From assembly GCA_002269645.1 (NCBI GenBank), contig NIVC01002376.1, positions 1-64,000 of the forward strand: a stretch of 64,000 bases of DNA, in the 5' to 3' direction. The first letter of the stretch is position 1, and each line of letters begins with the position of its first letter. A program made the translations under genes and the position numbers. Of the stretch, positions 14,201-20,200 are shown piece after piece. Source of the stretch: Macrostomum lignano (taxonomy: Eukaryota). Under the pieces are notes generated by a model. It was not told where the DNA came from. It did no database searches and worked only from the letters and a program-made list of their open reading frames with translations.

Positions 14201-17200
14201 TCTGGACCAGCCTCCCAGATCCTCAGTTGCTGGGCCAGCCTTCTAGATCCTCAGTTGCTTTGCCAGCCTCCCAGATCCTCAGTTGCTGGGCCAGCCTCCC
14301 AGATCCTCAGTTGCTGGGCCAGCCTTCTAGATCCTCAGTTGCTTTGCCAGCCTCCCAGATCCTCAGTTGCTGGGCCAGCCTCCCAGATCCTCAGTTGCTG
14401 GGCCAGCCTCCCAGATCCTCAGTTTCTGGACCAGCCTCCCAGATCCTCAGTTGCTGGGCCAGCCTTCTAGATCCTCAGTTGCTTTGCCAGCCTCCCAGAT
14501 CCTCAGTTGCTGGGCCAGCCTCCCAGATCCTCAGTTGCTGGGCCAGCCTTCTGGATCCTCAGTTGCTTTGCAAGCCTTCCAGATCCTCAGTTGCTGGGCC
14601 AGCCTCCCAGATCCTCAGTTGCTGGGCCAGCATCCCAGATCCTCAGTTGCTGGACCAGCCTCCCAGATCCTCAGTTGCTGGACCAGCCTCCCAGATCCCC
14701 AATCTAAGCCTCAATCCTTGTCTCCCCTCTCAGATCGACCGCTTCAAGGAGCCGCCCGCCTTCGGGCCGATGTGCGACCTGCTCTGGTCGGACCCGCTGG
14801 AGGACTTCGGCCAGGAGAAGACCGGCGAGCACTTCTCGCACAACAGCGTCCGTGGCTGCTCATATTTTTTCAGCTATTCTGCCTGCTGCGAGTTTCTTAC
14901 GAGCAACGGCTTGCTGTCAATCATCAGGGCGCACGAGGCTCAGGACGCTGGGTAAGGTTTGAGCCTGTCTGTCTGTCTGCCTGCCTGCCTGTCTGTCTGT
15001 CTGGCTGTCTATCTATCTGTCTGTCTATATATCTGTCTGTCTATATATCTGTCTGTCTATCTATCTGTCTGTCTATATATCTATCTGTCTATCTGTCTGC
15101 CTGTCTATCTATCTGTCTGTCTATTTATCTGTCTATCTGTCTGTCTGTCTGTCTATCTGTCGGTCTGTCTATCTATCTGTCTGTCTATATATCTGTCTGT
15201 CTATATATCTGTCTGTCTATCTGTCTGCCTGTCTATCTATCTGTCTGTCTATCTATCTGTCTGTCTATCTATCTGTCTGTCTATATATCTGTCTGTCTAT
15301 CTGTCTGTCTGTCTATATATCTATCTGTCTATCTGTCTGTCTGTCTATTTATCTGTCTGTCTATATATCTGTCTGTCTATATATCTGTCTGTGACTATAT
15401 ATCTGTCTGTCTATCTATCTATCTATCTACCTGTCTATCTTTCTGTCTGTCTGTCTATATATCTATCTGTCTATCTGTCTGTCTGTCTATCTATCTGTCT
15501 GTCTATATATCTGTCTGTCTATATATCTGTCTGTGTCTATATATCTGTCTGTCTATCTATCTCTCTATCTACCTGTCTATCTTTCTGTCTGTCTGTCTAT
15601 TTATCTATTTATCTATCTATCTATCTATTTTTTATACAGTGTTAACAACAACGGATGTTTTATATCCAAAACATGTTAAAATGCACGCGTGTGTATCCAA
15701 TACAATGTTTCATTTTCATGCCTTCTCTGACCTTAGCCTCTCTATCATCTTCCCTCTGTCCTTTCCCGCGTCTGCCGGGCGTCTGCAAGAATAATTGGTG
15801 GGTTAGGGAAGATTTTCCGAAGAAAGTTCACCTCTTAGGCATTTCGGAGCAGTAGAGGACGTTTTGCGAGCGCAAGAGGGAAGAGAAAGGGCGCTAAAAA
15901 TGGGATCTGGGAGGCGGTGGTCTGGCACACACCATGGAGGCATATGTTTTCACTGTAATAATCGTATTTCTTCTAGCGTGACATTTTCCCTCCGGGTGCT
16001 CCACAGCAAGTTCTCCAGCACTTTTATATTATTAATTATATTATCCCACATCTGCATCTCCAGCTACCGGATGTACCGCAAGAGTCAAGCAACCGGATTC
16101 CCTTCGCTAATTACTATATTCAGCGCGCCTAACTATCTGGATGTTTACAACAATAAGGGTTTGTTGCTTATTTTTATTGCCTCTCTGTTGTGCTTTTGAC
16201 TGCAACTTTATTTTATTGCCGATACCAATTCGTGCGCGCTTGGATAAACTTGCCTCACCCGCCACCCCAATGTACACTTTCTCTTGACAAACCCCCTCAC
16301 CCGCCACCCCAATGTACACACGCTCTTGACAAGCCCCCTCACCCGCCACCCCAATGTACACACGCTCTTGACAAACCCCCTCACCCGCCACCCCAATGTA
16401 CACACGCTCTTGACACACCCCTCATCCACCACCCCAGTGTAAACGCTCCTAATAAAGAATTTCACTGTTTATTCCCATGCAGCGGCCATTCTAAAGTACG
16501 AGAACAACGTGATGAACATTCGCCAATTCAACTGTTCGCCGCATCCTTATTGGCTGCCAAATTTCATGGACGTTTTCACCTGGAGCCTGCCGTTTGTCGG
16601 CGAGAAAGGTTCGTGCTTGGGTTTTATATTGCTTGAATATTTCGATTTTGCATTAGAAACTAATTAGTCTTACTCAATCGCATATTTGACCAGTTACCGA
16701 GATGTTGGTTAACGTTCTGAGCATTTGCTCCGATGACGAGCTGGTTGCTGACAGCGAAGAGGGAGCCGATGGTGAGTTCAAGAAGTTATTAATTATTAAA
16801 TTATTTTTCATAATAATTTGAAACGGCAATGTTGCAACGTCGAGTATTTTGGTTTTGTTTTTTTCTCTGTCCAAGTCTTAATTGGGCAGATATTTTAATA
16901 TTTACAGCATAGATATGCTATTCAGACGTTATTCAGACTACTTTACAGCCTTCAACAGTAGCAAGTAACGTGTGTTTATGCTGTTTTTCTAGCATGAAGT
17001 CGTAGCTGATTGAGTTCAATTTGAAATTTCCAATCACCCATATTAACAAAGTTTTTTTACATTTATAAAATAAATCAGCTAGCAAAACCCGGCGAGATAT
17101 TTAACCTTCTTATTGTGAATTTCTTTCAGACAAAAAGTCTTCTAAGGGTAAGAGAGCTTATCATATAGTTTAGTATGATGCAAGCCAATGATTTCAGTTT

Positions 17201-20200
17201 GATTCTGTCACAAAATAATTCATCTTTTAGTATCGATAGCTAATAAAAATTGATTGATTGACAGATTAATTTAAACCTCGATAAAATTAATTTTGAAAAA
17301 AAAACTTATGACAATGGACATCCTTGATGAATGAAAATTGTCTAAATTGATTTTGTACGGCTTATTAGTAATATTAGCAGCCTCTAGTGCTTTTTTTCCT
17401 TTTCCCAGTGTTTTTGTCTGCTCTATACTACTTCCAAACCCCAAAATGTGAACCAGTAGTGCAGTTCGAGTATTGCCATCTTTCTTAGTATTATTTATTT
17501 ATCCTGGTCGGAACTTCATTTCTTCAGTTGCTGCTATTCACTGTCAACTTGCAATCTGGCGGATTTGAAGGCCTGATAGCTTAACTTTACAATGCAATTC
17601 GCTAGTTGGGAATATTTTTGTATTTTTCCATTTCTCAACCCGTTACATTGGTAAATACTCGTTAACTCGTATAAATAACCGAGGTCAGGTGTGGGACTGC
17701 ATAGCACCCGTAGCTGCATACGGTCGTAGCATTGCTCACTCAACCACTCTTGCTGTTTGATCCATTTCCAATTCTGAATTTTCTACCCCACTCTACTCCA
17801 TTCTACCCACTCTACCCCACTCTACTCCATTCTACCCACTTTACCCCACTCTACTCCATTCTACCCACTTTACCCCACTCTACTCCATTCTACCCACTTT
17901 ACCCCACTCTACTCCATTCTTCCCACTTTACCCCACTCTACTCCATTCTTCCCCACTCTACCCCACTCTACTCCATTCTTCCCCACTCTACCCCACTCTA
18001 CTCCATTCTACCCACTTTACCCCACTCTACCCCATTCTTCCACAGTTTACCTCAATCTACCTCACTCTAAGCCACTCTACTCCATTCTACCCCACTCTAC
18101 CCACTCTACCCACTCTAACCCACTCTATCCCATTCTACCCCACTTTACCACAATCTACCTTCTCTACCCCATTCTAACCCACTCCAAACCACTCTAAGCC
18201 ACTCTACACGTCTCTACTCCACTCTACTTCTACTCTAGCCCCTCTACACTACTCCAGCGTTCTACCGACTCTACGTGACTCTACACCATTCTACGCGACT
18301 CCAATATAAGCCACTCTACCCCAGATTGCACTACTCAAAATCCCCCTATTTTAAGCCAGCATCCTACCGAACCCAACAGTAGGTCGCACCCTAAAATCTC
18401 GCATGCTTTCCAAAATCAAAAAAGTCCCTAAAATCCCATTTCTAATTAGACGCACTGAGCGCGGCCAGTGTTTTGTGCCAAAGTCGAGGTAAGTACGTAG
18501 ACAGCTGAGGAGGCCGTCTTTGAATTCAAAATTAATTATACTGTATGCAACTGATTTACAATATAATTATTATTTTCATCTTCTCAAGTCACCGAAGTGA
18601 ATTCACTGGAGTTTCCGCATATCTCCATGTAGAATATAGTTGGCATATCAATTGCTTTTAGATTATATTAAAAACCCCAAGCTTCTGTGGCTTTTTTAGA
18701 ATTTTAAAAGCCAATTGCGTATAATAAGCTTAATGTATTATACATGTAACTAACAAAGATATTAATAGAATTCAGTCATAGTTTTGCTTTTTCTGTCTGA
18801 TTATTTTTATTGCTTTTTTCAATCAAAGATTTGAAAATCACTTTGGAATTTTTCAATTTGTTTATTATTTTAAGCTTTTTTTAAACACCAATTTATTGGT
18901 GCCATTAATCTGTTTCACTTGAGAATTTTTAATTTTTTCTTCTATTTAAAACAAATCATTTTAGTGCCAACTGGTAAGATTTTAATTGTTGAAAAGTTAC
19001 TTTAAAAAATTTCCTCAATCTATGTTTGTTATATATTTTATTTTTTATTTACTCTTAATCTGGTTGGCAGTTTCTGTTTTCTATTTCTGCGTAAGTTATT
19101 TATTTCGACTATTCTCTCTGTTATTGTTATGTACCTATTTGAGCAAATTAGTTAAATAGCTAATAAAAAATTGCTTTCTTATTTATTATGCAGCTCAGCT
19201 ACTCTCTTTGGCGCAGCAGCGTAAGTTCTCTAAAGAAGCATTAATAACATGTGTTTGGCCAGCATATAGGAATTTAACAAATGCATCTTAACAAAAGCAA
19301 TAAAAACAATAAAATTGCATAATTCCACGAAATTAAAATATGTGTTTTTACGAGTTTTCGTATATGGTTAGGTTTCCATTCTATTTTGGGTTTAGATCTA
19401 GGTTTGGGTTTTACACTTAAAAAAATATTTAAATATCAACAGTTTATTAAAAAAAAATTAGTTGTCAATCGTACAGTTGTCTTACAATCGAAAAATTCAG
19501 ATTTAAAGGTTTTTAGGTATTTGTTTAAATTTTTGGCAATGAAAGAAGTTTTTACGCTTTAAAAGTTAACTTTTAGAATAGCGCTTTGTTAGTTTACTTT
19601 AAGGGTCTACCACTAGTCACTAGCTATGATAGTTTTGAAAGGAGCGAGTAATTATTAAAAGTTGAATATAAATATAAATAATTTCTTAGCTGTTTTTATT
19701 ATAAAAACCGTATTTGTAAATAACTAATGTGCTACCTGTTTTCAATGTTTTTATTAACTTCTGTGTTGGTAACAAAAAGAATCAAAGTGGCTAACTCAAG
19801 GCTTCTAATAGCTAACTGGTCTTTTTTGTTTGTATTGCTTATATTCTAATAAAATTGCGCCAGTATTTAATGCGTTTAATATTCCTTATATTTCTCTGCA
19901 TTTGTTATATTGTGTGTGTACGGGCGTATTTCATTAAGTATTAAATTTACAGAATCTGTGGCAATAAGACGTATAGAATGTAGTTTTTATGATTTAATCA
20001 ATAAAGTTTTTAATAAGTCTGCGCGGATTAAGAAACTGGGTTGTAAATTTTTTACTCGATAGTAAATTCTCATTCGACCTATAAATGTTTGACCTTGTGA
20101 ATTCCTTTAGTGCAGAAAGATGTATCAAATTATCGTACTATGTACATTTTATGGGTTGAAAATTCAAGCTTGACTCCACAGCGCATTCAGGGCTAATAAG

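Follow-up and report, generated by a model that had tools for sequence, protein, structure and literature searches.

Probable cassette exons, one of them annotated, in the linker intron of a Macrostomum lignano calcineurin A gene

Calcineurin is a central Ca2+/calmodulin (CaM)-activated phosphatase, and mammals insert a little-studied exon, exon 10a, into its linker. In mouse Ppp3cb and Ppp3cc, exon 10a is a 27-bp alternative exon, skeletal-muscle-specific, located immediately before the CaM-binding domain, and regulation by CELF and MBNL was reported for the gene set to which it belongs (Brinegar et al. 2017, eLife 6:e27192, PMC5577920). Exons of 3-27 nucleotides (nt) also form the Srrm234/eMIC neural micro-exon programme of bilaterians. 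The cis code described for it in the fly pairs a CUAAY branch point and an extended AG-free zone with UGC in the vicinity of the 3' splice site; calcineurin, CanA and Pp2B go unmentioned in the main text of that work (Torres-Mendez et al. 2022, Sci Adv, PMC8797185). With the exception of the mouse muscle study, no literature linking micro-exons to calcineurin or to Macrostomum was found. Here we describe intron 8 of Mlig021961, a calcineurin A gene of the free-living flatworm Macrostomum lignano, within a window of 64,000 nt (positions 1 to 64,000 of contig NIVC01002376.1, assembly GCA_002269645.1, Mlig_3_7). An initial annotation had placed three candidate micro-exons in this intron, called here a, b and c, and our analysis added a fourth segment, d. 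The intron probably harbors a small set of frame-preserving cassette exons, in which c is real and annotated, a and d are probably real, and b is most likely a chance pseudo-exon.

The gene and the segments of intron 8

To obtain the gene model, calcineurin fragments were aligned to the translated open stretches of the + strand. It spans 5293-21300 (+ strand), which is the range of the GenBank gene on this contig, and has 10 coding exons: 5293-5335, 7053-7378, 12983-13094, 13580-13725, 14734-14951, 16064-16158, 16483-16608, 16694-16771, 20315-20497 and 21173-21300. Every intron has GT-AG borders, and the spliced model encodes a stop-free protein of 484 amino acids (aa), identical in an exact protein look-up to the M. 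lignano entry UniRef A0A1I8IAP6. Window positions 2293-24300 agree with the contig record in every base, at coinciding coordinates. The proposed identification of the gene as calcineurin A (PP2B/PPP3C catalytic subunit) is supported. The gene product is recorded with PF00149, the metallophosphatase catalytic domain, and is 75-82% identical to bilaterian calcineurin A proteins. The calcineurin B (CnB)-binding helix, the CaM-binding region and the autoinhibitory segment follow the catalytic domain in this order; aligned with human CnA-alpha 330-483 (4ORB, 1AUI) and with the CaM-binding peptides of 2JZI and 2R28, they show no large gaps.

Intron 8 (16772-20314, 3543 nt, phase 1) has in this independent 10-exon model the same borders and phase that the initial annotation had given. 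It follows exon 8 (16694-16771), which encodes the end of the CnB-binding helix and an acidic linker and ends in phase 1, and precedes exon 9 (20315-20497), in which the CaM-binding region is encoded at 20329-20400, as aligned to the peptides of PDB 2JZI, 4Q5U and 2R28 and to human CnA-alpha 391-414. The claim that inserts in this intron would fall between the CnB-binding helix and the CaM-binding domain was borne out by alignment, which places the insertion point at human CnA-alpha D385/G386. The CaM-binding peptide crystallized with calmodulin in those three structures (A391-R414) begins 5 residues downstream, and structures truncated after the CnB-binding helix stop about 12-15 residues upstream (alignment). 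The description of the intron as mostly non-repetitive holds overall, but not for a minisatellite of 466 nt at 17782-18247 (10/29-nt unit, TCTACCCCAC-like), whose length varies among gene copies.

The calcineurin A gene is present in the assembly in three near-identical copies (L001, L002 and L003), and so is a paralogous calcineurin A gene (L004, L005 and L006). This three-copy state of both genes fits the known large-scale duplication in the DV1 line, and the copies of intron 8 differ chiefly in the length of the minisatellite. The paralog (Mlig002239/016076/024369) encodes a protein 82% identical to the product of Mlig021961 and has the same phase-1 intron, whose sequence is otherwise unalignable.

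Four short segments of intron 8 are bounded by splice sites and are in frame and open. Segment a (17130-17147, 18 nt, + strand) has the structure tttctttcag/ACAAAAAGTCTTCTAAGG/gtaaga and adds DKKSSK. Segment b (18450-18488, 39 nt, +) lies between ttctaattag and gtaagt and adds 13 residues. Segment d (18965-18973, 9 nt, +), which was not listed before, reads cattttag/TGCCAACTG/gtaaga and adds VPT. Segment c (19194-19220, 27 nt, +) lies between tttattatgcag and gtaagt and adds AQLLSLAQQ, the Ala at the junction becoming Pro. The coordinates, AG/GT borders and peptides first reported for a, b and c were reproduced, and spliced translations confirmed that none of the eight combinations of the three introduces a stop in the host frame. 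The lengths of a, d and c are multiples of 3 and do not exceed 27 nt, while b is in frame but longer.

The background level of such segments in intron 8 is not negligible. The intron has six GTRAG donors, all of them GTAAG, and 92 YAG acceptors, about one per 38 nt, so that almost any donor has an acceptor within 60 nt. Generic splice-site scoring with vertebrate position weight matrices was dropped, as the constitutive sites of the gene itself scored no better than the candidates, and simple motif counts with Markov nulls were used instead. Under a first-order Markov null, about 1.0 in-frame open YAG...GTRAG segment of up to 60 nt is expected, against the four observed (a, b, c and d). At least four segments occurred in about 4% of resamples of the intron (P ~0.04) and at least four distinct donors in about 0.6% (P ~0.006). 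The antisense strand of intron 8 has no segment of this kind. The cluster is thus modestly above chance, and about one of its four members is presumably spurious. A search of intron 8 for structured RNA with Rfam gave nothing above noise.

Evidence for exon c and for the probable exons a and d

Segment c is a real exon, already in public annotation. The 493-aa protein predicted from our model with c included is identical to GenBank PAA58423.1 and PAA74440.1 (Mlig021961.g3 and g2, on two contigs), and PAA65191.1, the protein of the third gene copy, likewise includes it. The Mlig_3_7 annotation draws on RNA sequencing (RNA-seq) data processed with StringTie and TACO and on a de novo transcriptome (PMC5730564), and exon c therefore rests on transcripts. 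The expectation that automated annotation would miss these segments fails for c, as each of the three gene copies has it in its RNA-seq-based GenBank model. The form with c (GenBank) and the form lacking it (UniRef A0A1I8IAP6) are both in public databases, and c is identical, splice sites included, in the three copies. No counterpart of c was seen in the paralog intron, where its similarity in 40-nt windows is at background level. One candidate for a c-like exon there, an 11-nt match (TGCAGCTCAGC), has no suitable donor and was treated as chance.

Segments a and d are probably real micro-exons that are older than the calcineurin A gene duplication, and it is this age that makes them credible as exons. 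When 40-nt windows were slid along intron 8 and compared with the paralog intron, d ranked 1/351 and a was in the top 4%, while b and c were at background. In the paralog, a corresponds to a' (L004 18404-18421), also of 18 nt and in register: tctttcag/ACAAAAAGTCTTCTAAGG/gta against tctttcag/GATCAAATTCTGCCAAAG/gta, with gtatgg as the paralog donor and GSNSAK in place of DKKSSK. The counterpart of d is d' (L004 20945-20953), with ag/TGCCAACTG/gtaag against attcag/TGCCAACAG/gtaagc; both encode VPT, and the sole exonic difference is synonymous (Thr). Both pairs match in length, phase, order and splice sites, and they are the only conserved parts of intron 8. When all open AG...GT segments of equal length were paired blindly between the two introns (618 pairs), the a and d pairs took the first two ranks and were colinear; under Markov resampling of the paralog intron, p was 0.008 for the a pair, 0.01 for the d pair and 0.002 for the two together. 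Segments a and d are also identical, together with their splice sites, in all three gene copies.

Segment b is most likely the single chance pseudo-exon predicted by the background rate. Of the three micro-exons originally proposed, it is the one for which no support was found: it exceeds the limit of 27 nt quoted for the class, its acceptor is TTAG, and a competing internal CAG acceptor at 18469 would give a frame-breaking segment of 20 nt. Compared with the paralog intron it does not rise above background, and two of its 39 nt are substituted in copy L002, with one change from Ala to Thr, so that it is conserved no better than the flanking intron. A repeat or transposon origin of b was considered and rejected, as no second copy was found in the window or in the paralog loci.

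Several points weigh against a set of cassette exons in intron 8. No transcript or protein record of a or d was found in either paralog, and neither appears in the RNA-seq-based annotation for any of the six gene copies. Exact look-ups of 17 hypothetical isoforms, which covered every combination of a, b and c, further ones that include d, and paralog products carrying a', d' or both, gave no record of a, b or d in a collection of 15 billion proteins; only the 484-aa form and the 493-aa form with c exist there, and skipping of c rests solely on the UniRef model. The paralog evidence for a and d consists of short matches (17/21 and 20/30 positions) and a post-hoc scan, and the three gene copies are 97-98% identical through intron 8, which leaves no power to show selection on pieces of 9-39 nt. 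The functional mechanism proposed below is wholly inferred. Several of these observations agree with the alternative that c, perhaps used constitutively, is the sole exon, and that a, b and d are chance associations of AG and GTAAG in an AT-rich intron, with coincidental matches in the paralog. This explanation would account for the isoform look-ups and for the StringTie-based models of six copies that omit a, b and d, and it draws on the density of YAG, which puts an acceptor in reach of nearly every GTAAG and makes one spurious segment expected in any case. We nevertheless regard it as rather unlikely, because it leaves unexplained the four segments where about one was expected, the empty antisense strand, the colinear a and d pairs at the head of 618 same-length pairs (joint p ~0.002) and the synonymous difference in d. 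In addition, short micro-exons are often lost by standard aligners and assemblers.

Two other explanations concern the role of the segments. The initial annotation had proposed that a, b and c are all real, combinatorial (up to 8 isoforms) and part of the neural Srrm/eMIC programme. Like eMIC micro-exons, segments a, c and d are of 3-27 nt, frame-preserving and located in a signaling protein, and every combination is in frame. By inspection, the 3' region of c resembles the fly eMIC code (PMC8797185), with CTAAT about 30 nt upstream as a CUAAY-type branch point, UGC at -22 and -5, and about 35 nt free of AG. However, no UGC occurs in the 35 nt before the acceptors of a, b and d, and b has neither support of any kind nor a length within the range. 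Moreover, c is the annotated form in models from whole-animal RNA-seq, which does not suggest restriction to neurons, and the vertebrate exon at the same site is muscle-specific. Neural control is therefore possible but unsupported, as by eye c fits the eMIC code and the others do not, and the full combinatorial neural proposal seems to us very unlikely. Very unlikely, too, is the further explanation that a and d are non-coding splicing devices, such as decoy or recursive-splice-type sites or binding platforms, that aid the processing of intron 8 and are not retained in mRNA. Such devices could be conserved along with their splice sites and still be missing from all annotated mRNAs, as a and d are. 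But in both paralogs a and d keep a length divisible by three and stay open, the one exonic change in d is synonymous, and intron 8 measures only 3.5 kb, whereas the introns known for recursive splicing are far longer.

If a, d and c are cassette exons, as we favor, they would insert 3 to 9 residues into an acidic, disordered linker, 5 residues upstream of the CaM-binding helix. Such inserts would alter the length, charge and helix propensity of the flexible tether between the CnB-binding and CaM-binding helices. With a, a stretch of net charge about -7 would gain three Lys and a KKSSK motif that might serve as a basophilic-kinase site; c would add an amphipathic LLSLAQQ stretch followed by Pro, and d would add VPT. 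The inserts may thereby change the affinity for calmodulin, or the geometry by which bound calmodulin draws the autoinhibitory elements off, and could tune the CaM-dependent release of autoinhibition by tissue, as was proposed for vertebrate exon 10a. Splicing variation of this kind is known, and no new principle is involved. In both M. lignano calcineurin A genes, the analysis flags two likely micro-exons that the annotation lacks, one of 18 nt and one of 9 nt. If a basal flatworm indeed has two or three cassettes at this site, two of which predate a gene duplication, it would offer a tractable system, with transgenesis and RNA interference tools, in which the effects of linker length and charge on calmodulin activation and the antiquity of the splice slot become askable.

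Other features of the intron and of the window

Between d and c lies a further segment of 20 nt (19071-19090, + strand; tctggttggcag/TTTCTGTTTTCTATTTCTGC/gtaagt), absent from the initial annotation, which has good splice sites and whose sequence differs in gene copy L002. Its inclusion would shift the frame, and it may thus be a poison exon or a mere decoy. In the paralog intron 8, a satellite of about 40 nt at L004 18600-20800 contains dozens of consensus-like acceptor/donor pairs (ttcag/TGAC...TAA/gtgagt). All its in-frame versions of at least 27 nt have stop codons, and only 6-nt ones (TGACAA) are open. This satellite is a natural field of pseudo-exons for the spliceosome to ignore.

Long minisatellite arrays fill nearly every calcineurin intron and much of the window, where they give long spurious open frames. 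They were found at 7400-10700, 11200-12830, 13730-14700, 14960-15640 and 20500-21100, with many beyond 22000. This agrees with the 15% of simple and tandem repeats reported for the M. lignano genome (PMC5730564). Upstream of the calcineurin start codon there is a remnant of an ISXO2-like, IS1595-type DDE transposase with an in-frame stop (3575-4114, + strand; Pfam PF12762, E = 9e-19). Downstream, at about 35900-42700 (+ strand), a voltage-gated K+ channel gene of the eag/erg (KCNH)-like type was detected, with the pore segment SLTSVGFGN and matches to Pfam Ion_trans and Ion_trans_2. The introns of this gene are also satellite-filled.

Comparison with inserts at the same site in other animals

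The stretch between ICSDDEL and RKEVIRNK was collected from about 200 calcineurin A proteins. Variable short inserts at the linker site were found in annotated isoforms from vertebrates, ticks, insects, crustaceans, molluscs, hemichordates, amphioxus, an acoel and cestodes. Among the invertebrates, these short and frame-preserving inserts include VPVAATTPPT in Echinococcus, AAYLLSLGLSSG... in a tick, AKLIIKQK and VAAKVVVQKKNG in insects, VKPPR in a mollusc and VTAT in the acoel. Their sequences are lineage-specific, and most of the isoforms are computer-predicted and functionally unstudied. A genomic check in Echinococcus granulosus showed a discrete 30-nt exon, cttcag/TGCCGGTAGCTGCAACGACTCCGCCGACAG/gtaaga, in the same phase-1 intron (L007, about 17487-17516). 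Compared with the flatworm d' (TGCCAACAG/gtaagc), it shares only the first 4 and last 5 bases (TGCC...GACAG), with 21 extra bases between them; the likeness would reflect either common origin or coincidence, and may be chance. A linker-centered homology search for transcript fragments returned none from M. lignano. Its top match, and the closest linker match outside Macrostomum, was an environmental JGI contig of 943 nt (P0001), which has a different insert of 12 residues at the same junction (...LVSDSDEGAD/DGGKAILSDQDA/ASVAARKEV).

Many inserts from distant phyla show a short aliphatic run followed by Q/K-rich residues: KLIIKQK, KVVVQKK, KILLAQKNK, RLIYGNKK, PILIQGQR and YLLSLGLSS, next to QLLSLAQQ in the flatworm. 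This common pattern hints at a shared functional motif or an ancient exon. One could go further and propose that the phase-1 intron before the CaM-binding helix is an ancient, bilaterian-wide slot for micro-exons, that c is the counterpart of exon 10a, and that Macrostomum has three independent cassettes (a, d and c; up to 8 isoforms) setting Ca/CaM sensitivity by cell type. We consider this broader proposal unlikely.

Vertebrate PPP3CA and PPP3CB also have exon 13 (30 bp, ATVEAIEA(D/E)(E/K)), which is likewise a short alternative cassette and falls within the regulatory domain of calcineurin. However, it is placed between the CaM-binding region and the autoinhibitory domain, where alignment shows that the flatworm gene has no insert. 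The closest characterized parallel remains exon 10a. In flatworm and vertebrates alike, the insert site follows a D/E codon plus one base and precedes xxAARKE, as seen in the vertebrate ...QFD/ERLIYGNKK/VGSAAARKE and ...EAE/DHYIPSYQK/GSTTV and in the flatworm ...GAD/AQLLSLAQQ/PNAVAARKE. The vertebrate inserts are ERLIYGNKK and EQLIYGQKK, which by their source names are of PPP3CB/PPP3CA type, and DHYIPSYQK in PPP3CC. Exon c agrees with exon 10a in lying in the same intron, in its phase 1, in its length of 27 nt, in preserving the frame and in its position directly before the CaM-binding domain. It differs in sequence, as AQLLSLAQQ has at most 2 identities in 9 with any of the three vertebrate inserts and at best a Q/L/L-I match. 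The two systems differ also in number, since mammals have one such exon per calcineurin gene, while the flatworm gene apparently has three.

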